In this document: positions 47,159 to 64,000 of the stretch, in pieces | Layout of the letters: every line of letters begins with the position of its first letter | Numbering within the stretch: position 1 is the first letter of the stretch | Origin: Eutreptiella sp. 'Long Island Sound 2002' | Taxonomy: Eukaryota > Protista > Euglenida | Reading direction: 5' to 3' | Length of the DNA: 64,000 bases | Assembly (NCBI GenBank): GCA_964036045.1 | Contig: OZ038378.1 | Location: 21,018,001 to 21,082,000 of the forward strand | The notes under the pieces: generated by a model | What the model was told of the DNA's origin: nothing | Databases searched by the model: none | Seen by the model: the letters and a program-made list of their open reading frames with translations, nothing else | Position numbers and translations under genes: made by a program

Positions 47159-47308
47159 CATACAACCCCATACAACCCCATAATTCCCCATACAACCCCA
47201 TAATTCCCCATAATTTCCCATAATTCCCCATAATTCCCCAGAATTCCCCATACAACCCCATAAGACCCCATAATTCCCCATAAATCCCCATAACTCCACA
47301 TACCCATA
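47159..47308 (-). repeat. Minisatellite (TATGGGGAAT)n, inverted relative to 41775-41966
   Basis: Reads ccccataatt/ccccatacaa on the + strand. Further arrays at 47860-47995, 55613-55732 and 56284-56419. Confidence 0.95.
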
Positions 47309-48939
47309 GGGGGAACGTTAGCGCGCCGGGCGCGCGCTGGGCATCTTTTTGGACCCGTGCCCCTCTAGTGGCCTTTTAGGGGGTGCACTAAGGGGGCGCA
47401 CTTAGCACAGTGCAGCTATTTGGGCGCCTGGCTGTACTAGAGACCCACACTTTGAGATACTAGGAGCATCATGGTGACCCCTAGCGTAGGTTTTGACTTC
47501 TGATTTTGTCTCCTTTGTTTGGACTGACCAAAGCAACTCGGTCGCCACGCAAGATGAGGCAGAGGATGAGGCGGAAGTGTGTGTGTTGTGTTGCCAACGG
47601 CGCTCCACCGTTGCAGTTTGTGATGAGTGTAAGGAGCACTATTGTAATGAGTGTATTGACACCCACACTTGTGGGACCAATGTTGTTTGTTAATTACACT
47701 ACAAATGACAGTTGGAGTGGTTGAATTCACAGATCCTGCTTTATTTTGCAACGTGCTTTGTAGGGAAGGTGTGCAGTGCAATGTGGTCTACTTGGGGGGC
47801 TTCTCCATGGGAGGGTAAATCTGGGGCTGAAGTCGGGATAGTTAGCGCGCCGGGCAAACATTCCCCCATAATTCCCCATAAAACCCCATAATTCCCCATA
47901 CAACCCCATAAAATCCCATAATTCACCATACAACCCCATAACTCCCCAGAATTCCCCATAATTACCCATAATTCCCCACAATTCCCCATAATTCCTATCC
48001 TTTGGCAAGCAGACGTCTTCTGGCGCTGGCGAGCGCATAGGCCTGGACGTTTTACACCGAGCCAGCCAAGGAGTAATTTTATTACATTGGTAGCCCATGC
48101 ATCATTTTCATATTGTTGCAATAGTTGCCCTCTTTCAACACTGTGTGTTGACCATGACAAGCTCTGCACACCAAAGTTGCTTACGTTCGGCCATGGTATT
48201 CTTATGCATTGTTACTTCGTTTTCTGCTGCAATGTCTGTGTGTGTACAGTGGCAGCACGGAGGGGGGGGCTGTCACTTGGCAACGGTCCCCCCAGGGGGT
48301 GGCAGGAGACTGTCTTCCCTTGGGTGGAGAAGGACACCGGGGGGTGAGGGGAAGATTTAGAACAGGTGAGACAGCTTTTGACAGCTCATCAGCCCCCCCC
48401 CCAGAAAAAAGAATAGTGATGAAAGTTCTTGTGGTCCGAAATTGCTTGGGCAAAAGGGCGTGTGTTCCCATTGTTTGCAGACACGTGATAGGATTCACCT
48501 CGCAATGTGGCAGTGAGAAGGGTGCCTTGACGCAATGCCCACACATTGCAAATTTTAGCCCCGTGCTGATGGCACCATTGCAGTTGGACATGCCCTCCCC
48601 ACGCCCCGCAGAATTGCATGTGCACCCTTGCCCTTCCAGGGCCCTGCCCCTCTTCACAGCCGATCAGTATTTTCAATTTCTTCTTGTCTCCATTCGCTTG
48701 TGCCCCCGCTCTCCTCTCACAGTGTTTAATGGACCATGCACAGGGAGCATCCCTGGCATCCTCCTCAGGCGCCACATACTACACCGAGCCAGCGGCGGAG
48801 TCCTACCATGCAGAGCCCCTCCGTTGCAGGTCCTGGCGCCCCCCACTCGTACTCAGCCTCCTCTGCCTCATGGGCGTTGCTTTCCTTGGGATTTGTGCAT
48901 TGCCACCGCGGCCCTCGCACGCGCTGCAGTGGGCTTGGC
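47189..48939 (+). repeat. 1.75-kb direct repeat, copy R1 (contains a duplicated 5' region of the RNase H-like gene)
   Basis: Matches 55613-57363 at an offset of 8424; about four substitutions seen by eye. Confidence 0.95.
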
Positions 48940-49731
48940 AAGCACACCGCCTGTGAAAGTTCTGGGAAAGATGGAAAAGACACACGCCTCTTTTTCGCCA
49001 ATGTGGACTCTATGATATTGAATGAGGTAGTGGACAAGTTCGGATCGCAGCCACACTTTGCAATAATGTCCATTCCATGGCTGGAGGCTGATGATTTGGG
49101 GAAAATGCACCAGGTATTGGAAATCTTTACCACCAAGGACAAACGTAAACAATTGGGTCCACATCTGTTTGCCACTATAATTGCTCCCTTCTGGGAAGAT
49201 GGTTCCTGCCTCAAACCAAACTCCGGTATCATGCTGCAGTACCTCAATGCCTCAAAGTTGCGCATGGGTGTTACCGCCGACATGAAGAAAAAAGTGTGTG
49301 CGCAACTCAAATCATTTGAGAAGGCGGGTATCACTCTGAAGGAAGAACTGACTGGAGATCTGCTGAATGGGTATGACTCTGACGGAACAAGCTCCACAGT
49401 CACTGCCTCATGGTCGACAATAGCCACGGTGTATCGGATCGGGGTACCCGCCTATTGGAGGGAGATCCAGGTCAAGGAAGTTCTAGGCGGCAAGCACAAG
49501 CAAGAAATGGTGCTGCACAGGTCTGCATTTAACGCCGGTGAGATGCACCTAGCCACTTGGAGAATTCAAACACCAACGGCAGATGATCTTATCGGAACCG
49601 TGTTCAAAACCAAGGACGGCCGCAGGCACCTGACGGTTATCAGCAACGAGGATTTCCAGTCCAAAAAACGCATGGCCCAAGGGAAGTCGGCAGCAACCCA
49701 ACACACCCACAGTGAGTATCTCCTTTGCTAA
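48940..49731 (+). CDS. LINE ORF1-like protein (5' part fused in frame to duplicated host sequence from ATG 48736)
   Basis: Open frame directly upstream of ORF2; no CCHC knuckle seen. Confidence 0.6.
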   Translation, partial: KHTACESSGKDGKDTRLFFANVDSMILNEVVDKFGSQPHFAIMSIPWLEADDLGKMHQVLEIFTTKDKRKQLGPHLFATIIAPFWEDGSCLKPNSGIMLQYLNASKLRMGVTADMKKKVCAQLKSFEKAGITLKEELTGDLLNGYDSDGTSSTVTASWSTIATVYRIGVPAYWREIQVKEVLGGKHKQEMVLHRSAFNAGEMHLATWRIQTPTADDLIGTVFKTKDGRRHLTVISNEDFQSKKRMAQGKSAATQHTHSEYLLC

Positions 49732-49755
49732 GCGGAAAAGGGATGAGCCAGGAAA

Positions 49756-52700
49756 ATGAATCCGACCCAACAAACTGCTCCCTTGAATAAGATAAAACTG
49801 CTCCCACCTGCATCAAAGACACGCCTTGCGGTGTTCAATGCCAATGGAATCTGCGCAGAAGTAACCCCTTCTGGTCAACGGAAGCGACGCGTGGACTTCA
49901 TCACAAAATTCTTAGTACAAAAAGAGGTCTCCGTCATGGGGATACTGGAGCACCACCTCAGTACGCCCGAAGATCTGATCCGTTTGCAGGAACACTTCAA
50001 AGCTTTCAACTTTCATTTTTATGCTCAACTCTCCCCATAGGGAAGAGGTGATGCAAGCGTTGCCTTCAGGCAGGAGTGGTCCATGCCATCACCCCCAGAG
50101 CCCATCCCCATCCCTACACACCCTGAGCTGCAGTCAAGAATGATGTTGGTCAAGTTACTTTCCCCCTTCGGGGCCTGCTACCCGATTTTGGTGGCCCACT
50201 TCCACCATGAGGCCAAATTGAGGCAAGCGCAATGGACAGCCCTACATCAATTCTTTGTCCACAGACAGGACAGGATTATACTATTGGCAGACCATAATTC
50301 TTTCATCCTGCCCCACAGAGATGTAGCCTGCCCCCCACAATCCATTGATTCTGAGGTGACTGCAGCTAGAACAGTCGAGACCCAATTCCTAGCCACCAAT
50401 GAACTGATGGACGCCTATCCATTTGTGCATGAAGCCAAATCGGTGTCGTCACATTTGGAAGGATGGACTTGGGGCTTCCCTGCGGCAACACCAAACAAAC
50501 CACCAGCCGGGAAAAAACGCAAACACAGTCACACGACACAAGACGCACCACAAGTAAAACCACCCCCAAAACAGCACAGGACCACGGCGACGCCACCAGC
50601 CAACCACACACACGGCACAACAATAAAGGACCGCAGAAGGCGAATTGATAGAATCCACTTCCCGACAGAACTCTCTGAGTATGTTACAGGATGCTATCCT
50701 CTATTCTTAGGCGCCTCCGACCACAAATGTGTCTTAATGACGATGGACCCACCACCGCAATCAAACACTGCAAAGCGCACCCGCTGCCCGACAAATTTTT
50801 TGCATAATCAAGAACTGGTCGACACACTGAAAGCAGAGGTGATGGGGCTACGCTCAGAGGGCTTCTGTTGGTGGAAGGACGCACAACACATCATCATGCG
50901 CACATCCATCGACTACGAGAAGCATCACAACCCCTCGGGTTTCACCAACATACAGGCACTCGTCATGGAGTGCTCCACTACACATATCTCACCACTGGCA
51001 TGGGATCATCTGAACGACCTGGGCTGCCACCCACCAGACCCATCTTCTGCCTATTCTATGTTGGTGATGTTACAGGCTCAGTCAGAGGGTGAACAGGCCA
51101 GGGAACAGGTACAGCGACAGCTGAAAGAAAGTCTTGACACAGCCAACACGGCAAAGGATAAGTCAAGAGAGCTTTGGAGACTCCTCCAACAACTCAAAAT
51201 AAAACGAAAGCTCTCATGCTTGCGGACAACCACCAGCCAGTCCTTACACTCGGCTGACACAATCGCCCACGAAATCACCAGCAAACTGAAGTCTACCATG
51301 CAGGCCACTGGTGCCTCTGAGGATGCATGCCGGCAATATCTGCACCCCTTCTTTCATGGAAAAAACACACAGTCACTATTCCGCATGCTCACGAAACCGA
51401 TAGATCTAGACCTGATTCAGGCAACCCTATTGTCTTTGCATCCCACGTCTTCCCCAGGAGAAGACGGTTTTACGGCACAAGTGTACCGTTCCTTTCTGCA
51501 TGAATTTGCGCCTGTCATGCTGCGCATTGTCACACAATTTTTGGTCGATGGCACACTGCCGCAGCAGTGGACCACAGCACTACTCAATCCCATCCCCAAG
51601 GGCTCAGGTGTGCCCACAGCAGGTGATTTACGACCGCTAGTACTCCAGAATGTGGCACTGAAATGGTTGGCAGCATCTATCTCTTTGCATCTCAAAGACC
51701 TCATCATCTATTTAACCCCTCTTGAGCAAAAGGGCTTTATTTGCGGTAGATACATGTTTGATCATTTGTATGAATCTTTCGGTTCCTGGAGGCACTACCC
51801 AGAAGCCGCCTTTCTCCCCATAGACTTTTCCAAAGCTTTTGACAGCGTTACGCACACATATTGCTCTGTCTTCTTTCAAATGATGGGACTGCCACAGGGA
51901 TATGTTCCTGCGCTGCTTCATCTGTTTCAAGCGCCAATCAAACTCCTCCTACCACAAGGAATCATGCATCTGCATGGATATTCCCCCACCTCAGGAGTCA
52001 GGCAGGGCTGCCCTCTCTCACCCATCTTGTTCTCGATGCTCATTTCACCAATAATTGCCCATTTGCGCTCACTGAACCACGACATCCGCTCACTTCTGTA
52101 TGCAGACGATTTACTGATTATTCTACCCTTTCCCCAGCATCTCTGTGTGAAATTGATTCATGGAGTTCTGCACGAGCTTGCCCTCTTCACCAGGATCACG
52201 GGGCTCAGGGTCAATTTCGACAAGTCGGCAACTCTGTTGAAAGGAACATGGAGCCTGCATCACAAATCACTCATCAACTCTCTCCCGATTGCCATCAAAC
52301 CATCCGCTAGATACCTTGGGGTACTGTTGGGCAATGCGACACCCGAAGAGTCATTTGCTCCGGCACTGCAGAAGGCTCTCCACCGAGCGGTGCGCATGCA
52401 AGAATGGGGACTGACACTCCAGCAACGCATAGAACTACTCAAGCAATGGGTATTGCCTGTACTGACGGTACCAGCACGCGTCATCTTCCCCACAAAGGCG
52501 ATTTGTGCCCAACTGGCGGACGTGTACCGCATTGCACTCAAATTGAACCCATGGGGCATCACTCTCCCCATCCTGGGGCTACCTGTATCAGAAGGGGGTT
52601 TCTCACTGATGCCCCAGAAATCCTTTCTGATGTGGCAACACGCCTCCATGTTTTTGCAGTACGTCAAAGAACCAGCGACAATTTCCAACATCCTAGCCGT

Positions 52701-54993
52701 GCCCTTCAAGCACTGGGCCCAGAGATACGGAGTGCACTGCACCTCGGCAACCCTTCCTTTCTTCAGCATGGGACCTGTTCCTTACAGCACCATGCCTACC
52801 ATGGCCTTTGCCGCCAAGGCATACTCAGTCACCATGAATTTGGCTTCACCCACTCTGCCAGCAATAGAACCGGCCCTGCTACCACTGTGGCACAATCGCT
52901 TGTTTGCGAAGTCGTCAGGCAGGACCTACTACTCCCCATCGCTGATTCGTAAAAATGTGCTATTTCTTAGAGACATCGTCCAGAGTCCGGAACTGTGCGA
53001 AGCACTACCACACACGTGGAAATCTGTGTATCGATTACACAAGCGAAAGCTGTTATCACTGCGCAGTTCCCCCCCTGCAGTACATCATGTGCCGAGCTTT
53101 TGGTTCCATTGGCAATCCTCGGCTGTGTCCAGGGAGCTAGCCAAGCCGAACAATTTCTGCACCAGACAATCCAGGGACACATGGAAGGCCCTCATGGCCC
53201 TACAGTTACCAGACACGGACAGGCATTTCCTATACAGGGCATTATGGCGTAAACTCCCGACGGGACAACGCCAAGCAAGAATGAACCCGGGACAGACCAA
53301 CTGCCCTATTGATGGGGTGCCTGAAACCCACAAGCATCTCTGCACGGACTGCCGCTTTTTGAAAATTGCATTTGACTGCATCAACAAGGCGTATGCGCCC
53401 ATTGTGATTGAAGGTAACCCCATCTCTTCTGTGTCCGCATTGGTCTGGGATACCCCCTCCCTTAGCTTGAGTACTGCACCACGACTTCTGGCCTGGTCGG
53501 CCATCGTGGTCAACTGGGGTCTGCGAACATCAGCCCGGATTAAGGGTTTCACCGTCACGTGGGAAAGCTTCCTGACTGGCTGGGTGAAAAAACTAGCCAC
53601 TTGGCAACAATACCCTCTGAGGTGGCTGTCCACTGCTGAGCTAAGTATATTCACGGACTGCGTCCTGCAGCTTTTAGAAGAGGGTAAGCTGGTTCACCCC
53701 AACCTCTCCTGTTCTGCTAATTTGCCGAGGCCACGACGCACGGGCAATAACGCCAAGATGGCCAGGAAACTGGCTGCAAAGCAAGAGTTTGCCTCCCAAC
53801 TGGAGGGAATCGTGGCACAAGGGCTGACTCAGATATATACGGACGGCTCATCAGAAAGGGTCCTGCCCATAGGGTATATTGGTGGATACGGAGTACATGT
53901 GCCGAACACACTGGATCTAGGGGCACCTATGCCTGCACACCTACCTCAAACAAATAATGCTACTGAGGTGTACGCAGTGACTCAGGGACTAAAAATATTT
54001 CCACAAGCAAACTTGGCCCTGATGACAGACTCTGCCTTGGTCTACCTAGGGGCCACCGGCGCAGCGCGAATCTGGAAAATCCGTGGCTGGCACGGATCAC
54101 ACGGCCCCATACTACACCCCGAACTATGGGAAGAGCTTCTACAGCTCATCGCGGACCACCAAGGTATACTGAGTTGGTACAAGGTCCCATCACATGTGCA
54201 GATAGAGGGTAATGAACGTGCCAATGATTTGGCAGAATGGGGACGGCAGCAAAACCCGCTATACCCAGAACCCCCCGGGGACAGAGAGGAGGGCAGGGCA
54301 GGCACGGAAGCGAACCACAGCAAAGTGATCATTTTTTCACACAAGCACCCATCCCCCCCCGAGCCCGCAGTACATGCAGGTTCACCCCCACCCCCAGTGG
54401 TGCAAGAACCCTCGACACCGCCGTGTGCGACACCGTCCGCTCCCATGTCAGGCACACAGTCAGATACACACAACATGGTGACACCCCTCGTGACACCTAT
54501 TAGAGTACCGGTCAGTGCCTCCCCATTGTGCAGAGATACACCCGCCCGCCTGCTTTTGAATGATCTGGATTTATGCCTCATGGATGAACCTGTAAGTCGT
54601 CAGAGTGGCTCCCTCTCAGAGACCACCGTGTCTTTCGCCTCCACAGAGGATTACATTCAGTCTCAGGCTTCGCAGGACAGTCTACTCACGGCATCAGGGA
54701 GTGAAAACCATTCGGTCCCACGGCCAACCAAACGAAGGCATTTCAACACGCCTAGCCCGGTGCCATCAAGCCCCGCCTCAGTGGAAATACACTCACACGG
54801 AACAACCATGTACTCACCCAGCATGCCGGCGCGTTCCAACAGACAGCCTGTATACTCGCCACGGCAACCCGCATCGCCTCTGGCGCCAGACACGCCCAAT
54901 TTCTGGCACTACTCAATATGTGACACTGATTGCTCAGGGCACTCCCCACCAGAGTCACCCACCACCCCGGACTCTGGCTGTTTTGAGATGTAG
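49756..54993 (+). CDS. LINE ORF2: apurinic endonuclease, reverse transcriptase, zinc finger, RNase H (one premature TAG at 50038)
   Basis: ORFs 49756-50040 and 50083-54993 share a frame. APE motifs FNANG, ILEH, ADHN, RIDRI, SDH; RT motifs IDFSKAFDSV, GVRQGCPLSP, YADD, RYLG; Zn finger CPID...H...C; RNase H YTDGS, TNNATE, TDS, HVQIEGNE. Confidence 0.95.
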
Positions 54994-55612
54994 GGGCCCT
55001 CTCCCATGTCTGAATGAACAAGCAAGAAAGCACCTGATCCGCAATTGAATTCGTGGTGACGATAGGGTCTGATTGTCTCTGTACCCCGTCACGCTATGCC
55101 CTTGATTGAGGTCCACCCCATGCCCCCAAGAGGTCCCCCCCCCGGGAGACCTTAAGCAAAGTCCAATTTGGCTCCGGTGCCAGTGGATGCTCTGCGGCAC
55201 GGAGCCATTGGCCTGTTCGACTATTGTGCCCAGTCACGATCATGTACAGGACGTCGAGTTCAGCTCAGACGTCAGTACTACCAGGGTGCGAAGGTTGTAG
55301 ACCTGATTTGGGATGTGTTTCCCCACCCCCGAGGGAGTCGTCTGTCAGACACCCAAACACCCTTGAATGTTATGACTGTTCCGTGCACACGCACCGGAGG
55401 TTGGGCCTTCGACCCCTCACACACATGCTGGAGACACTGTCACTGTGGCTGGTCACGGCTATGTACATAGATAGTGGAGCACCCCAACCAAGAAGGGGAC
55501 ACATGGAGCCTGTGTGAATGAACTGCACATGCACGCACTGACGTGATGAACTTATGGATGTACGACAGGCGGTGGTGGACGTCTGTACGTTTCAGCAAAC
55601 CACCTTTATGGC

Positions 55613-57363
55613 CATACAACCCCATAATTCCCCATAATTCCCCATAATTCCCCATAATTCCCCAGAATTCCCCATACAACCCCATAAGACCCCATAATTC
55701 CCCATAAATCCCCATAACTCCACATACCCATAGGGGGAACGTTAGCGCGCCGGGCGCGCGCAGGGCATCTTTTTGGACCCGTGCCCCTCTAGTGGCCTTT
55801 TAGGGGGTGCACTAAGGGGGCGCACTTAGCACAGTGCAGCTATTTGGGCGCCTGGCTGTACTAGAGACCCACACTTTGAGATACTAGGAGCATCATGGTG
55901 ACCCCTAGCGTAGGTTTTGACTTCTGATTTTGTCTCCTTTGTTTGGACTGACCAAAGCAACTCGGTCGCCACGCAAGATGAGGCAGAGGATGAGGCGGAA
56001 GTGTGTGTGTTGTGTTGCCAACGGCGCTCCACCGTTGCAGTTTGTGATGAGTGTAAGGAGCACTATTGTAATGAGTGTATTGACACCCACACTTGTGGGA
56101 CCAATGTTGTTTGTTAATTACACTACAAATGACAGTTGGAGTGGTTGAATTCACAGATCCTGCTTTATTTTGCAACGTGCTTTGTAGGGAAGGTGTGCAG
56201 TGCAATGTGGTCTACTTGGGGGGCTTCTCCATGGGAGGGTAAATCTGGGGCTGAAGTCGGGATAGTTAGCGCGCCGGGCAAACATTCCCCCATAATTCCC
56301 CATAAAACCCCATAATTCCCCATACAACCCCATAAAATCCCATAATTCACCATACAACCCCATAACTCCCCAGAATTCCCCATAATTACCCATAATTCCC
56401 CACAATTCCCCATAATTCCTATCCTTTGGCAAGCAGACGTCTTCTGGCGCTGGCGAGCGCATAGGCCTGGACGTTTTACACCGAGCCAGCCAAGGAGTAA
56501 TTTTATTACATTGGTAGCCCATGCATCATTTTCATATTGTTGCAATAGTTGCCCTCTTTCAACACTGTGTGTTGACCATGACAAGCTCTGCACACCAAAG
56601 TTGCTTACGTTCGGCCATGGTATTCTTATGCATTGTTACTTCGTTTTCTGCTGCAATGTCTGTGTGTGTACAGTGGCAGCACGGAGGGGGGGGCTGTCAC
56701 TTGGCAACGGTCCCCCCAGGGGGTGGCAGGAGACTGTCTTCCCTTGGGTGGAGAAGGACACCGGGGGGTGAGGGGAAGATTTAGAACAGGTGAGACAGCT
56801 TTTGACAGCTCATCAGGCCCCCCCCCAGAAAAAAGAATAGTGATGAAAGTTCTTGTGGTCCGAAATTGCTTGGGCAAAAGGGCGTGTGTTCCCATTGTTT
56901 GCAGACACGTGATAGGATTCACCTCGCAATGTGGCAGTGAGAAGGGTGCCTTGACGCAATGCCCACACATTGCAAATTTTAGCCCCGTGCTGATGGCACC
57001 ATTGCAGTTGGACATGCCCTCCCCACGCCCCGCAGAATTGCATGTGCACCCTTGCCCTTCCAGGGCCCTGCCCCTCTTCACAGCCGATCAGTATTTTCAA
57101 TTTCTTCTTGTCCCCATTCGCTTGTGCCCCCGCTCTCCTCTCACAGTGTTTAATGGACCATGCACAGGGAGCATCCCTGGCATCCTCCTCAGGCGCCACA
57201 TACTACACCGAGCCAGCGGCGGAGTCCTGCCATGCAGAGCCCCTCCGTTGCAGGTCCTGGCGCCCCCCACTCGTACTCAGCCTCCTCTGCCTCATGGGCG
57301 TTGCTTTCCTTGGGATTTGTGCATTGCCACCGCGGCCCTCGCACGCGCTGCAGTGGGCTTGGC
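55613..57363 (+). repeat. 1.75-kb direct repeat, copy R2 (continues into the intact gene)
   Basis: See R1. Confidence 0.95.
57100..57146 (+). promoter_or_regulatory. Polypyrimidine tract and AG splice acceptor 6 nt upstream of the ATG (cis, or spliced-leader trans-splicing)
   Basis: ttcttcttgtccccattcgcttgtgcccccgctctcctctcacag|tgtttaATG. Confidence 0.5.
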
Positions 57364-60300
57364 TACCCCAGCCCCTGCTCTCTGCACGCCCATCCATTGT
57401 GCCCCAAGTAGCTCCGCAGTCTGGTCTGGGCTTCTGGGGGCGCCGGCAGGTGCCCTCACTCACAACCGTGTGGGCTGCTGAAGGGTCGGAGGACGAGACG
57501 GCCGCCGACACGGGGCCCCGCCAGAACGCCACGACGGGGCGCTACAAGCGCTCGCAGCCACGCGCCCTCAAGAGGCGCCCTGTGTACGACAAGGTTTGTG
57601 CCTGCGCAGCCCCAAGCCTGAGCGCCCCGGGGACGGTGGGCGGTGCATATGAATCGTGGTGCCATCATGCAGGAGTCATGGGGTGTGACGTTGGGGATAT
57701 GCTGAGGAATGGTCCAGGGCCCAGCACAAGTGCGCGAACACCGCTTTGTGGTGCAGGGGGGTGACTAGATCAATGATCGTGTTGATCTTTGCCCCCCTCC
57801 AGAACCCCCACCCTACGCCAATGGGGAACAGTAGTTTGGCCAGTGACAAAGGCCCGAAGGGCAATCGAGCTGATGAAGGTGTACGCAAATGCCCTGACTT
57901 GAATTGTATCTTCTTCACCCATGGTGAATGGAATCCCCCCCCCCCCTGAGTTGCGTTCATTCAAAATGTTCTGAAGGAAACGGGGAATCTTAAGATGCCC
58001 CTGGACCCCCCTGCCCACGCCGTAGGGGCTGGGGTCCAGAAATATTTCCAGGTCCAATGCCCAACACACGGGAAGCGTGAGCAGGTAGACACAAGGCCCT
58101 TTCCATTACCGTTTGCTCTTCTGGCGAGAGGACTCTACGATGAAGAGCACCTTTGCTGCATCCCAGAGCTATCTAAAGGGTATCTGGTGGTGTTCCTGCC
58201 AAGCCGTGCCTGGTCCACCTCGAAACCCCGGCTGCCGGCCCCTCTGATCCGGCTGCCTTCCCTCTGATCCGGCTGCCTTCCCTTTTTGTAGGGACACCAT
58301 GCCATGCGGGGGGTGCACTGTACTCACATACTGACCAGAACCTTGAAGTTGCATCGAACCCAAATGGAGGGTTAGAGGATCGCAGCAAAAATCCTCCGAG
58401 TACGGCCAATTTCAGTGGGGGAACACAAGGTCTGGCCTGTTTTCCAGACTCCCCCATCAACCCCTTTCTAATGTGCGCTGGCTGGAAGCCCCCCCCCCCC
58501 CCACATGAGCACCAGGTCCCAACCACCATCTGTCACGGTATGGGCCCTGGGGCCCCCCTATTGCACGGCAACAAATCCCCCAGGAACCGCTTGCCCGTGG
58601 GCTGCGTGTAGACATGTCCTTCTCAGACCCGTCGGACCCTCTTTACCCCCTGACATCGGCCATGCTTCTGCAAGGGGGAGTGGGACCACATCATGCGGGA
58701 CCTCCCATACTGGACCTCCTTTTGTGGGGACAGCGGAGCATTGAGTCAGGGGAAGAGATGCGGGAGGGGGGGGGGGGGGGGCTCCCTTCAGCGATGATCC
58801 GGTTGCCCTGCAGGTGCCAGGACCTGACGCCGCTGGCCCTCCAACCGCCACCGTGACTATCGGGTCGCTGAAGGCCAACGAGACGGCGGAGGATGGCCGC
58901 AATGTGTTGTTTGCCATTTGGTTCGGCGACAAGGACCCACGGAATGTGGTTGAGGAGCTGCATGACAAGGCCCAGGTACGTTGGGGTGGGGTGTGGCATG
59001 GCGTGCTGGGCATCTGTGGTTGGTGTCGGGCGTTGCACGGCTTTGGGGGGGTGGTATGGTATGGTATGGTATGGTATGGTATGGTATGGTATGGTATGGT
59101 ATGGTATGGTATGGTATGGTATGGTATGGTATGGTATGGTATGGTATGGTATGGTATGGTATGGTATGGTATGGTATGGTATGGTATGGTATGGTATGGT
59201 ATGGTATGGTATGGTCTGGTCTGGTATGATGAACGCCCCCCTGTCTGCGGCTGTGTGGTGGCTGGATGGCGCGGTAGCTGGTGGTGGTGGCCGCTGTCCA
59301 CAGGTTGGGCTGGCCCGCTGGTTCCGCTGGTTGAGTTTTGTGTGGTGTGGGGCAGTGGTGTGGGCAGTAGTTGGCCGTGGTGGAGTGGGGGGGGGGTTCG
59401 GTGCTGTGCAGTGTGTGTTGTGGTGTGGTGTGTGTGGGGGTCGGTGGGGCGGTGTGCTGTGACGGCACATGTTGTGGCGCTCCATCCGATACGCCACCAT
59501 GGCCTTTCCAGACTGAGAATCGCGCGCAGCTCCGCGCTGCCCTCGCCGTACTGAAGATGTTCCCAGAGGAGGAGGTGCTGGAGATCAGGACCACCAACAC
59601 CTACATTCCGGAGATTGTGTACGGCAGCTCCTTGGGCAACTGGAGGCAGAGGCAGTGGAAGGGGAAGATCAAGAACTCGAAGCTGTGGCAGCAGCTGGAT
59701 GCTGCATTGCTGAAGCACCGAGGGAAGGTGACCTGGAGGTGTGGGACCCAGCCTTCTGGGGGCCTGTGTGGACCGCAATGAGGCTGGTGTATGCCCCCAG
59801 GGGATCAGGCGAGTTTGCAGAGCACGAGGCGACACACATCAGGGGAAGCCTTGGGGGCCGCGGAGGCATCATAGTGCCGCAGCGGCGCAGGGGGGCCCAG
59901 CGTGGGGGGGTCTATGCATTCAGACACCCGCCCCTGACGTCGGCCTTGCACATGCCCGTGGGGCCTGAAGAGCCCGTTGTCCTGCTGGACGCATGCAGTG
60001 CGTTCCTCTTGTTCTCTCTTCTGTTCCCATAAAGTTATTGCATCAACGGCGCCCAGAAGTTCTCCTGAGACTGCAGTTGGGGTCCATGGGGGCAGCCTCA
60101 GCGGCCCCAACTCAGTTTTACTCGGCCACACGGGAGCTTGCGGTGAGGCATGGACTTCGTCATGATCGCGCATCTGCTCTTGGCGTGCACTCGCCGCCTC
60201 TCGCACAGCCTATTCATGTCTACCCCCTGCTGTCCGCTCCCTTTGTGGGTGGTCCCTCATTTCGGAAGCCTGCCTTGGCCCAAGCAACCCCCCCCCCCCC

Positions 60301-61551
60301 CAATCTCACGCCACAGGGACACGGGGGGGGGGGATTCTGAAATCAAACTCCAATGCCCCCCATGTTAGACCCCTTTCTTCAGCCTCGCAGTCCGACTACA
60401 CAGTGCCAAAGAACAAACTGTCAAATAAAAGGCAACAGTAAAAAGACAAGTCACAAAAAAATGGCTGCTGGCTTGACAGTGGGTTTCGATAGAATCCCGG
60501 TTGCTTTTGCTCCGAATCAAAGCCACATCAGTCATGCTGTGCAATCTCCGTGAATGATGTGTTGGGAATGCCGTGCATGCAGTGCACATGCAGTGCAAAC
60601 TTTTGTATGTCGGCAACTACTTGAACCCTAGTTTTGGCCCTTTTTCACAAGTTTGTTGTTCTACATCAGGTTTTTTTATGCTTCTTGTGCATTGAGGATG
60701 TGGCACATTTGAATTGCCACCCATTTTCAGCCATTTTCAGCCATTTTAGCCCATTTTCACCCAGTTTTACGGCACGTTCTTTGTTATAGTGGATGCTGGA
60801 TTATGATGATGGGGAATCACCGGACGTTGTGTACATTCACGGTGCAACAAATCAGCAGTTGGGTTGTCACACACTCGGATTCCAACCTCCATGGCCATTG
60901 CCTTACTATCTCTAGGAAACAATGTCCTTTGTGGATTCTCTTTATGAGCTAGCTTTTGAACCCTCCATCCACACTCTCAGATCATCGCGAATTAGTAGCA
61001 TGGCTTATCAGTAACGGCCCACATAGTGCTGCATATTGCTACAAGTTGGGCCCCAATCAGGTGAAGGCAGAATGCCTATGTCCCAGGAAGGGTGCCACCA
61101 TCTCCCAACACACTCAACCAACAGCAGATTGCGCTTGGCCACGGCCACCAACCACCAAGGATATGAAGACCTTTGTGATGCTTGCATAAATGCAAGGTGG
61201 TTTGCTCCCTTCCTCCCTTGCTAGGTTTCATCGTATGGGCACCGCTGGCAGTACCCACGCAGTGCGCACGCAGTGCAACAACTTGGCTCTTGCAGCAACA
61301 ATATGCACGGCACCTCGTTGCACAACGGGATGCACGGCTGAAATCAAGCCTCCAGTCCTCTTTCTTCATCCTGTATGTGAACCTGGGCATTTTGGTGGGT
61401 GGCCTGCGAATGTGCAAAATCATTGCACCCCTTTCCCCATTGCTGTCGGACACTGGGATGCTTGCACCTCATCAGCCATGTGACCACTGGTGCACAACAC
61501 ACACCCCACACAACACGCATGAACGACGTAACACGCACAACACACAACCCA

Positions 61552-61587
<36 letters not shown>

Positions 61588-61700
61588 TGGAGGAAAGGCC
61601 GCGAGAGGCGGAGATTTAAACATTGCTGCAGTGCGAACACTGCTGTAGAGAGGTGCTGTATGATAGCGAACGCTTTGGATTCTGTTGAAATGATTGGGCG

Positions 61701-61734
<34 letters not shown>

Positions 61735-64000
61735 CGCTCAACACGCACGGCACACACGACCCACTTCACACACAGCATACACTGCAACACAAGCAACTAA
61801 TTGCGGTGAATGATTGATTGCAGGGGGTCCACACAGGAATTTGCGATGGCTCACAGGATTACCGCCCTCCGGAATTAGATATCTCCCTAGTGTACCGCCA
61901 CCAATCATCCAGTTTCATCAAATGCAATCCCCTTGCAGTTCATCGCACTGGCAACCCTCTGGCTCCACAGGTATGCAGACCCTGCACAGCGCGCGCAGAT
62001 GCAGATGTACATCAGCAAGCGGAAGGCACTGATGACGTCCTCCAAACCCGTGTACATTTCCGTCCTGCCCTCCGCCATGATCACAAGACCCATCCTCTAC
62101 GGCTGCTGGTTTGGGAAGAACGATCCCCGCAACACCGTTCAGCAACTCACCGATGCTTTCCAGACCGAGAATCGCGCGGTTGCTCTCGCTGCCCGCCTCT
62201 TGAGACCCTCCCTTTGCCTCACCCTTTCCAATCTCTCTCGCTTTGCCTCCCCTGCACCCTCCCACCACATCCCTGTCTGAGGCTTCTTAGAAGACCACCA
62301 CATCCCTGCGTGTGGCTGCTTGCCACAAACCCCCCACGTCCCTGGGATGTGGAGGGGTAGTGCGTTGTTTGATGGTTTACAAAACCTGCACGCTGACCAG
62401 TTTGCAGGGGATCGCGATTATTGGGGGTGTGGGGTGTGGGCAAGCCCAACAAATCCGTTATGCACGTTCACCAGGTGCAATGCAAAGTTTCAGATGCCCT
62501 GAGATATGGCACACGGATGGTGGTCCGTCCCCCCTTCATACCCCTCGTGCCCCCCCTCAACTGATCATGTGATTCCCTGCTTCTCCCTCCTCGACCCCCA
62601 CCCACTGTTGCGCCGCCATCCCCAGTCCCAACTCCATTTTGTGCAGGTGCTCAAGGCCGCCATTCTGGCGCTGGAGACCCTGAAGGGGCGCAACGAGCCG
62701 GTGATTGAGGTCAAGTCCCGCTCGGACTACATCACGCAGTCGGTCCGCCGCCTGTCCGACTGGACGCAGAACGGGTGGCTCTCAGCGGACGGCCGTCCCA
62801 TCGCGAACCGCGACCTTTGGAAGAGGGTGTGGAGCCTGCTACAGACGATGGACACGGAGGTGTGCTCTGGGCCCTGTTCTCTACTCGGGCCCTCCGCCCT
62901 GCGCCCATGTCTCCATGCCCACCCTATGCTCTGATCTCCGCCCCTGTCCTTTGCCCCTGTCAACGGAGGCGCGGGTGCCAGTGGCCATGCGGCACGGCTG
63001 CTGATCGACGTTCCCCGGGTGGAATCCTAAGGTGGGGGAGGGGAACCTCCAGAAGGGATGCGCCTGGGCAGGGTGCTCGTTTATGGCCCGATCTTTTTTG
63101 TTTTTTTTGGGGGGGGGGCGCTTACAAGCGCTCTTAGGGAGCCCCCCCAAAAACTGCCCAACCGCCGTCGATTACCCTCTAACTGCCTTCGGTTACCGTC
63201 CAACCGCCGTTGGTAACCGCCGGAATGTAACCGAGTGCATGAGCACCCATTTTGCCTGTTTTGTTTCAAGTAGGGAGCGCTCGGCACCTGAGAGAGAGTG
63301 GGGGCGTACGGACAGGATGTGCGGGCTTGTGGGCGGTGCCCACCTTCCACCTCCCCTTCTAAAAAAAATGATGCCTTCGTTATGTCTTCCCCCCTACAAT
63401 ATGCCTCTGTCTCTGCTGCTGCCCAAGGCCTACACTTTTCCCTGCGCCCCTTTCGCCCCCCCCTCAGTGCGTGTCCCCACCCCCGCCGCCTGCTTGTTTC
63501 TTCCCCCCCACCGTATCAGATGTTGTGTAGCTCAGCTGTCATGCACCTGACACCCGGTCTAGGGATACCAGGTTCGAATCCTGGGGGCACCGGGTGACGA
63601 ACACTCCAACCGACGTGGCTCGGCACGAGTGCGACAGCTGGGCGTCCACCCTCCCACAGCCCTCAGATTAGCAAGAAGAACGGGTCGCTAGACCTGGAGA
63701 ACGCCCAGGACGGCACCTCACCCCTGCCCCTCCCCTATCCCCCTGTCTCCGCGGCTGCACGTCTCTGCCGGTCTCGTCGCAGGTGATCTGGAGGTACCTC
63801 CCCCTGGCGTCTGACCTGGCCTTGCAAGCCTCACTCTTCTCCCCCGCACTGCTCCCGGACACCATCCCCACGCTGCCCCCCACGCCCCCCAAGACCACGG
63901 TGGCGTACAGCAGCGTGATCTGGCCCAAGGGCAAGGGCGCCCAGGCCGTGTACGGCATCTGGTTCGGGCCCAAAGACCCGCGCAACATTGTGGGGCTCAC
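57153..64000 (+). CDS. Protein with a bipartite signal/transit-like presequence and at least 3 tandem catalytically degenerate RNase H1-like domains (runs off the window)
   Basis: Phase-compatible GT-AG exons 57153-57593, 58814-58975, 59512-59738, 61971-62178, 62647-62859 and 63783->64000. Repeated WFG.xDPRN (three times), TENRA, W..NGW....I.N..LW and V.WRY, all RNase H1 motifs. Confidence 0.85.
59052..59215 (+). repeat. Microsatellite (TGGTA)n, about 33 units, intronic
   Basis: Direct observation. Confidence 0.98.
63050..63290 (+). repeat. Dispersed repeat family member (aaccgccgt..gttacc motifs), related to 21060-21310
   Basis: Shares blocks with the reverse complement of the 21-kb copy. 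Confidence 0.55.
63519..63591 (+). pseudogene. Degenerate tRNA-like sequence, possible SINE head
   Basis: A-box-like tagctcagctg and a perfect T-arm ccagg-ttcgaat-cctgg; poor acceptor, D and anticodon stems. Confidence 0.45.

Follow-up and report, generated by a model that had tools for sequence, protein, structure and literature searches.

Can a gene that encodes RNase H1 domains without a single complete active site be more than a relic, and if so, what would its product do? The question is raised by a 64,000-nucleotide stretch of the euglenid Eutreptiella sp. 'Long Island Sound 2002' (assembly GCA_964036045.1, contig OZ038378.1, positions 21,018,001 to 21,082,000; the window in what follows), in which an initial annotation, made from the letters alone, had proposed a tandem pseudo-RNase H1 protein with a plastid-like presequence that starts at 57153 and runs to the window end. 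Our answer to the first part is firm: the locus is transcribed, it is conserved among euglenophytes and restricted to them, and it encodes a pseudo-RNase H1 of four domains. As to the second, the evidence points, with less certainty, to the binding of nucleic acid in the plastid.

A spliced, transcribed gene that runs past the window

The region is eukaryotic, intron-split and transposon-rich, and in three-frame translation the RNase H-like pieces fall into separate open reading frame (ORF) fragments. The gene, which is nuclear, is not confined to the window: exons 1 to 6 begin inside it, and the coding sequence reaches about position 71379 in window numbering. For the extension past 64000, ORF P0003 of the window was taken from its 2.3-Mb ENA contig, of the same assembly, with 10-kb flanks (L024); this piece is identical to the window across the overlap and supplies about 8.9 kb of additional downstream sequence. 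A nine-exon model built with relatives as a guide places exons 7 to 9 within 7.4 kb past the window end (Table 1) and gives an open product of 931 aa, consisting of an N-terminal presequence, four RNase H1-type domains and a helical tail. The initial annotation had claimed at least three consecutive domains and a multivalent product; four domains were found once the gene was extended beyond 64000.

Evidence for transcription comes from RNA contigs of two estuary metatranscriptomes and two runs of 'organism A', which were aligned to 59230-64000. The contigs cover the exons in all four runs with 0 mismatches and reproduce exactly the window exons drawn in the initial annotation. Joints with GT..AG introns were seen from 59738 to 61971 and from 62859 to 63783 in four of the four runs, and from 62178 to 62647 in three of the four. 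A loose contig end at 59508 (run X4) matches the 3' end of exon 2 and so links 58814-58975 to 59512, and the junction between exons 1 and 2 is based on colinearity and on contigs running 19-116 nt beyond exon 2. In the spliced order, 'KVTWR' at the end of domain 1 joins straight to YADPAQRAQMQMYISKRK... and then domain 2, and 'QTMDTE' in domain 2 joins 'VIWRYLPLASD...' and then domain 3, the start of which reads VAYSSV ... WFGPKDPRN in exon 6. A small exon at 59801 (GSGEFAEHEATHIRG), supposed to be a remnant of the His...Asp helix of domain 1, was rejected because the RNA contigs remove 59739-61970 as a single intron.

Two further observations concern the 3' part of the gene. The intron between exons 7 and 8 (68498-69833; 15930-17265 of L024), which belongs to the homology- and frame-based part of the model, begins with GC and may be either a GC-AG intron or a non-conventional euglenid intron. 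In addition, a 5751-nt RNA contig of run X4 extends 5036 nt beyond 64000, where the remaining coding sequence is only about 1330 nt, indicating either a very long 3' untranslated region or run-on into a neighbouring transcript.

The family is confined to euglenophytes and under purifying selection

A profile of the two C-terminal half-domains was searched against 1.84 billion representatives. Matches at E<=1e-30 were limited to four proteins: P0001, P0002, the window's own ORF (P0003) and P0004, an unrelated three-domain protein from ENA whose first domain has an intact DEDHD site. There are three close relatives only, namely P0001 (JGI transcript contig L001), P0151 (from an ENA contig, 89% identical to P0001) and P0002, which is EukProt Euglena gracilis EG_transcript_1799. 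L001 begins with TTTTTTTCG, a euglenid spliced-leader tail, and its first ATG opens a 651-aa ORF. Given that the JGI sample of P0001 (3300017323) also holds a protein identical to Eutreptiella gymnastica UniRef A0A6U7VL58, we take Eutreptiella gymnastica to be the source of P0001. At 52% identity to the Eutreptiella-type proteins and 44% to E. gracilis 1799, with which it is colinear across four domains and the tail, the window protein comes from a third euglenophyte lineage. No further family members emerged when the Eutreptiella and Euglena proteins were used in word searches, and a locus scan of JGI metagenomes met only ordinary RNase H1 genes at <=40% identity. We regard the restriction of the family to euglenophytes as firm. 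The P0002 ORF begins after beta1 of domain 1, though the published table flags a spliced leader; the late start could mean that the isoform is truncated, that trans-splicing occurs at an internal site or that the assembly is at fault.

Between the Eutreptiella-type transcripts L001 and L002, dN/dS is 0.17 overall, with values of 0.21, 0.036 and 0.083 for domains 1 to 3 and 0.48 for the presequence. The pattern of substitution at the catalytic positions (see below) is specific to each domain and the same in the window protein, the Eutreptiella-type proteins and the E. gracilis protein.

These data bear on an alternative, namely that we are looking at decayed retroelement RNase H copies or at a pseudogene. 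An intact long interspersed nuclear element (LINE) with reverse transcriptase and RNase H does lie 2 kb upstream of the gene, and the duplication that flanks it enters exon 1. However, the gene is spliced and transcribed, its ORF is open over 931 aa, it has orthologues in both Eutreptiella and Euglena, and its domains evolve at dN/dS 0.04-0.21; furthermore, it is intron-split, contains no reverse transcriptase and carries the cellular RNase H1 motif WFGxxDPRN, and identity to the RNase H domain of the neighbouring LINE is 19% versus 27% to a cellular-type domain. We consider this explanation excluded, with next to no probability left to it.

An RNase H fold with dismantled active sites

Pfam RNase_H matches two single exons on their own (E 1e-6 for exon 3 and 4e-6 for exon 5), three stretches in P0151 (E 7e-32) and four in P0002 (E 3e-43). 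E. coli RNase HI aligns to 59512-59736 (E 1e-8), with Gln opposite Glu48 and Thr opposite Asp70, and domain 2 of the orthologue can be aligned to it as well. Structural matches to the catalytic domain of human RNase H1 were obtained with Foldseek and VIA-align from the AlphaFold model of P0151, in which predicted local distance difference test scores are 70-90 in the domains and the presequence is disordered except for its hydrophobic helix. Domain 2 (287-431) superposes on human residues 136-284 with Z 16.1 and a root-mean-square deviation of 2.6 A over 140 aa, and domain 3 (441-590) on residues 136-286 with Z 15.9. Pfam and superposition thus agree on the RNase H fold of a five-stranded sheet and helices A-E.

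The catalytic positions were read by alignment with intact domains, these being the RNase H of the neighbouring LINE, P0005, P0008, the middle domain of P0011 and E. coli RNase HI. At D10/E48/D70 domain 1 reads I/Q/T (the first being Ile, or Gly with a one-residue shift), domain 2 reads S or I/V or A/R (V for E48 and R for D70 in the window), domain 3 S/E/H and domain 4 G/E/H. Accordingly, D10 and D70 are replaced in every domain of all four sequences and E48 in domains 1 and 2, no beta1 strand holds a D or E, and the set of catalytic carboxylates of a type 1 RNase H (D10, E48, D70 and D134) is incomplete throughout. The His124 loop is deleted, with beta5 (V.WRY) passing directly into a linker helix that takes the place of helix E in the P0151 model. 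Domains 1 and 2 thus stand without E48, His loop and helix-E Asp, and domains 3 and 4 retain an acidic helix (VELRERKEAIEEL and AAQDELA).

The motifs that the initial annotation had read off the window all recur in the spliced translation: TIGS, YISV and YSSV at the first Asp, RAQL and RAVL at the Glu, TTN and SRS at the next Asp, and the tryptophan motifs WRQRQW, WTQNGW, NSKLW and NRDLW. Its statement that the C-terminal H...D helix is absent has to be amended, since the His loop and the Asp are indeed lost in domains 1 and 2 but a helix, the linker helix of the model, is present. The proposal that the protein is non-catalytic is borne out by the replacement of D10 and D70 throughout, by substitutions that are under purifying selection, and by profile and structure alignments that confirm the fold and reveal no acidic replacement in beta1. 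With the metal-holding Asp pair lost in every domain, the protein is predicted to be incapable of cutting RNA:DNA hybrids by the RNase H mechanism.

Could domains 3 and 4 nevertheless cut nucleic acid through a remodelled site composed of E48, the conserved His at D70 and the acidic residue of the last helix? E48 is kept in both domains of all species, RTHS is invariant and recurs as KTHSEY in a paralogue, and domain 4 keeps its AAQDELA. Against this, the metal-bridging D10 is S or G, beta1 offers no acidic residue in its stead and the His124 loop is missing; to our knowledge, no RNase H works without D10 and D70. Residual cutting of this kind strikes us as very improbable.

What has been kept lies on the binding side of the fold. 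The phosphate-pocket residues T43, N45 and N100 (E. coli numbering) are retained under purifying selection, as are the tryptophans of the substrate handle and the Asn of N..LW. Across the three lineages, invariant runs of at least five residues are limited to AQTENRA, where helix A begins and which supplies the pocket's Thr and Asn, and RTHSIYIVQNVQKL, which covers the former Asp70 site and helix B of domain 3; both sit in what was once the groove for the substrate. Domains 1 and 2 of the window protein, the linker between them and all four E. gracilis domains are basic (pI 9-10.5). We infer that the protein would bind nucleic acid without cutting it, the candidates being RNA:DNA hybrids and structured RNA. 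The tail that follows the last domain is about 150 aa long, Ala-rich, helical and conserved (33% identity between the window protein and E. gracilis), with a confident long helix at 617-651 in P0151, and matched no Pfam family.

Presequence and plastid location

The N-terminus is made up of 39 polar residues, the hydrophobic segment LVLSLLCLMGVAFLGICAL at residues 40-58 (Kyte-Doolittle peak 2.68, with 0.55 for the next-best window) and 51 acid-free residues, in line with the roughly 50 given in the initial annotation; the acid-free run as a whole covers residues 30-109 (P 12, S 7, A 8, R 7). In P0151 and L001 the hydrophobic segment lies at 35-55, and the same layout of 35-39 polar, 20 hydrophobic and 50 acid-free, P/S/A/R-rich residues is common to all three proteins. 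Among 375 confirmed E. gracilis plastid preproteins, the signal domain falls within residues 9-60 and an optional stop-transfer domain within 97-130, and class II, which has the signal domain only, accounts for 37%. The window presequence has its signal domain within 9-60, followed by an acid-poor, transit-like region and by no second hydrophobic domain at 97-130. Judged by these published ranges, it fits a euglenid class II plastid signal, and the signal-plus-transit layout of secondary plastids recognised in the initial annotation is matched.

Location was read more directly from the E. gracilis orthologue. EG_transcript_1799 is entry 1799 of the plastid proteome, where it is listed as 'RNAse H1' (K03469) in the category DNA replication, recombination and repair, with origin 'Rhodophyta', a log10 plastid/mitochondrion ratio of 1.60 (about 40-fold) and a log p of 5.3 (bioRxiv 10.1101/573709 dataset 1). 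It was not found in the mitochondrial proteome supplements, in which the ID format is unchecked. Recovery from purified plastids thus applies to the E. gracilis orthologue only, and for this protein residence in plastids is firm. Together with the class II presequence it upholds the organellar placement that had been proposed for the window protein. The claim that no such family had been described stands in part: the dead, tandem nature of the protein has gone unremarked, but the orthologue itself had been listed as 'RNAse H1' (K03469) in two papers. RNase H is never mentioned in the main text of the preprint (bioRxiv 10.1101/573709), and a search of the full-text literature turned up nothing published on RNase H1 proteins that are tandem or dead in this way.

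Two further RNase H entries, 12679 and 21394, are present in the same plastid proteome (bioRxiv 10.1101/573709). For entry 1799 the transcriptome of the non-photosynthetic E. longa is recorded as 'no hit found', and entry 12679 does have an E. longa orthologue (PMC7580956 Data Set S1).

A competing view of the N-terminus takes the hydrophobic segment for an uncleaved signal anchor, which would leave the protein in the endoplasmic reticulum (ER), the Golgi or the outer plastid envelope rather than in the stroma. Euglenid plastid import runs via the ER and Golgi. That the segment starts only at residue 40, behind a mixed-charge N-region, that the P0151 model has a helix, of low confidence, at 35-49, and that the proteome is silent on the sub-compartment would all suit an anchor. 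Position 40 is nevertheless inside the published signal range of 9-60, and 37% of the confirmed preproteins share the one-domain layout. Moreover, enrichment of the orthologue in plastids relative to mitochondria is about 40-fold, and at dN/dS 0.48 the presequence changes rapidly, in the manner of targeting peptides. We think an anchored protein improbable.

What the protein might bind

Given the retained binding residues and the plastid residence of the orthologue, we favor the possibility that the product holds RNA:DNA hybrids multivalently, without cleaving them, in the stroma or nucleoid of the plastid. R-loops or primers would thereby be marked, protected or organised while the plastid is photosynthetically active. 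Of the possible ligands hybrids seem the most likely, since selection has preserved the groove and the pocket for the DNA phosphate. Whether the protein is such a binder at all we regard as an even call. A fuller version, in which a natural, tetravalent 'dead RNase H1' reads or shields hybrids of the plastid chromosome (R-loops and replication primers) and leaves them uncut, specifically in photosynthetically active plastids, is a tentative proposal that we hold to be possible rather than probable; the restriction to photosynthetically active plastids is suggested by the fact that E. longa has no detectable homologue.

Several points weigh against a hybrid binder in the plastid. With respect to the gene model, exon 1, exons 7 to 9, the end of exon 6 and the GC donor at 68498 rest on homology and frame, not on reads. 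With respect to binding, the hybrid-binding domain (HBD) of eukaryotic RNase H1 is absent, since neither the window exons nor P0151 nor P0002 gave a Pfam match to PF01693; domain 2 has lost most of the basic residues of its handle (WTQNGWL); and no residue corresponds to R179 or W221 of human RNase H1. The eroded handle and the two missing residues mean that hybrid affinity may be weak or altered. With respect to location, entry 1799 is flagged as carrying a spliced leader and as 'no signal' (bioRxiv 10.1101/573709), the P0002 ORF, which starts inside domain 1, is without the presequence, and the proteome enrichment is a fractionation result that gives no sub-organellar address. Finally, E. 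longa replicates and expresses its plastid genome without a detectable homologue (PMC7580956), which argues that the role of the protein is not in core genome maintenance.

Alternatively, the dead domains might serve as a plastid RNA-binding cofactor that binds structured or double-stranded RNA and aids splicing, processing or transcript stability. Precedent for such a role comes from maize RNC1, which has two catalytically dead RNase III domains and promotes the splicing of chloroplast group II introns, and euglenid plastid genomes are very intron-rich. The analogy gains from the plastid location of the orthologue, from the presence of several domains of a nucleic-acid-binding type with dead sites and from the erosion, in domain 2, of the basic handle that grips the DNA strand. 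It loses from the fact that the best-kept residues, T43, N45 and N100, form the DNA-strand phosphate pocket in RNase H1, and from E. longa, whose plastid genes retain introns and yet no homologue is found there (PMC7580956). On balance, an RNA cofactor would appear rather unlikely.

It is also conceivable that the pseudoenzyme domains act on an active plastid RNase H or another nucleoid enzyme by docking, sequestration or competition, with the conserved C-terminal tail (a coiled coil in Eutreptiella) mediating assembly. Entries 12679 and 21394 are potential partners, conservation of the tail extends from the window protein to E. gracilis, a long helix is seen in P0151, and proteins that combine live and dead RNase H domains in tandem are common (49 of the top 150 matches). 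The strongest conservation, however, is in the nucleic-acid groove and not on an obvious new surface, and we rate a scaffold or regulator as unlikely. A hybrid binder in the plastid remains the reading we favor.

Genomic surroundings

The LINE upstream of the gene is flanked by the two copies of a 1752-bp duplication, which are 99.7% identical (5 differences by blastn) and have the element between them (Table 1). The left edge of the duplication falls within a (CCCCATAATT)n array, and the upstream copy joins the gene's first 70 codons to LINE sequence. That exon 1 lies partly inside the duplication raises doubt as to whether its first 211 nt are gene sequence at all, and their similarity to P0151 was tested for this reason: residues 1-70 score 51 against the P0151 N-terminus, with shuffles at 25.7 +/- 5.0 and none of 2000 reaching 51. 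By this comparison the duplicated 211 nt are still homologous to the N-terminus of the orthologue.

Table 1. Exons of the pseudo-RNase H1 gene and neighbouring features, in window numbering
Feature	Position	Strand	Description
Exon 1	57153-57593	+	147-aa presequence; donor AAG/gtttgt
Exon 1, parts	57270-57326; 57327-57479		hydrophobic L40-L58; acid-free to residue 109, then acidic/basic spacer
Exon 2	58814-58975	+	N-terminal half of domain 1 (VTIGS ... WFGDKDPRN ... DKAQ)
Exon 3	59512-59738	+	C-terminal half of domain 1 (TENRAQL, RTTNTY, WRQRQW, NSKLW, KVTWR)
Exon 4	61971-62178	+	linker helix (YADPAQRAQMQMYISKRK) and N-terminal half of domain 2 (VYISV ... WFGKNDPRN ... TENRA)
Exon 5	62647-62859	+	C-terminal half of domain 2 (VLKAAILAL, KSRSDY, WTQNGW, NRDLW)
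Exon 6	63783-64169 (in window to 64000)	+	end of domain 2 (VIWRY), linker, N-terminal half of domain 3
Exon 7	68099-68497	+	L024 model
Exon 8	69834-70133	+	L024 model
Exon 9	70921-71379	+	L024 model
LINE	48940-55611		intact; ORF 50083-54993 with RVT_1, zf-RVT and intact RNase H
Duplication, downstream copy	55612-57363	+	upstream region and first 211 nt coding of exon 1
Duplication, upstream copy	47188-48939		other side of LINE
Putative spliced-leader acceptor	57144-57145	+	AG after pyrimidine tract, 7 nt 5' of start codon
Microsatellite (TGGTA)35	59052-59228		intron 2

Just upstream of the start codon, a pyrimidine tract and AG would act as a spliced-leader acceptor, with ctctcctctcacag before and TGTTTAATG after the putative splice point; no spliced-leader sequence was found within the window near the gene or the LINE. 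Within intron 3, RNA-contig depth rises to 4383x and 1669x at 60830-60989 in the two estuary metatranscriptomes and is zero in the organism A runs, and (CCATTTTCAG)-like 10-mers occupy 60718-60769, just 5' of this spike. Intron 5 holds a tRNA-like string with a box-B motif (GGTTCGAATCC) at 63525-63600, which may be a fragment of a tRNA-derived short interspersed nuclear element. Rfam and ARAGORN returned nothing over 55-64 kb, including the string near 63570 and the depth spike.

Significance

The immediate consequence concerns annotation: the E. gracilis plastid 'RNase H1' almost certainly cannot cut, judging from its substituted sites, which corrects its entry. The enzyme that really removes hybrids in the plastid then has to be looked for elsewhere, entries 12679 and 21394 being examples. 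This euglenophyte-confined family is tied to the photosynthetic state by its absence from E. longa, and the dead RNase H array has apparently been kept ever since Euglena and Eutreptiella parted. Evolution appears to have built, in a secondary plastid, a four-domain counterpart of the dead RNase H1 that laboratories use as an R-loop tool. If hybrids are what it binds, plastid R-loop biology would gain a natural reader or protector, together with a ready-made multivalent scaffold for hybrid binding, and, were the fuller proposal true, no dedicated pseudo-RNase H reader of hybrids would have been described in an organelle before it.

Comparison with known systems

The domains share their fold with cellular RNase H1 (human RNASEH1 136-286 and E. 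coli RNase HI; PF00075, K03469), as well as the motifs WFGxxDPRN, T-x-N-R at the start of helix A, W..xGW and N..LW. Unlike cellular RNase H1, the euglenophyte protein has four copies per chain, with D10 and D70 replaced in all and E48 in two, a deleted His loop and no N-terminal HBD. Arabidopsis AtRNH1C, a chloroplast RNase H1 that handles plastid R-loops, is likewise an RNase H1-type plastid protein, but it has a single active domain, and the kinship extends to the RNase H1 domain only. RNC1 is a plastid pseudo-nuclease that works by binding, as the euglenophyte protein may do, though the fold of RNC1 is different.

Repeats of RNase H1-type domains with degenerate copies that lack D10, D70 and the last helix motif are also found in P0005, P0008, P0011, P0019 and P0038. 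Among the top 150 matches, about 49 are proteins of about 300 aa with one intact DEDD domain and one degenerate domain, and the three-domain proteins P0011, P0019 and P0038 (a 14-member cluster) have exactly one intact domain each. This tandem architecture of live and degenerate domains looks widespread and is apparently undiscussed. In each of these proteins a single DEDD(H) domain is intact, whereas in the euglenophyte family none is, and a plastid presequence has been added. Among the best matches, arrays without a live domain are confined to the euglenophyte family, bar fragments, the uncertain P0086 and a few short matches of two or three domains, for which the all-dead classification is partly spurious.

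A paralogous euglenophyte family (P0153/P0010/P0167, represented by Eutreptiella gymnastica A0A6U7VL58; L025) is annotated 'ribonuclease H'. A0A6U7VL58 has RNase H1-type domains substituted in the same style (IYTGS, KTHSEY; RTKSEE), but it has two domains, lacks a hydrophobic segment at the N-terminus and does not share the tail; it belongs to this separate family.

A possible functional parallel is man-made. Engineered dead RNase H1 (D210N, 'dRNH1') is known to bind hybrids specifically without cleavage and serves as a hybrid probe. Like dRNH1, the window protein is built on an RNase H1 domain unable to cut, here as predicted from sequence; whereas dRNH1 carries a single point mutation and keeps its HBD, the window protein is natural and tetravalent and has several substitutions per site. 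The E. gracilis entry had been listed under DNA replication and repair only, in supplements that are silent on the dead sites and the tandem build. What we describe is, then, a derivative of a well-known domain, in a protein that had been listed before but mis-described.

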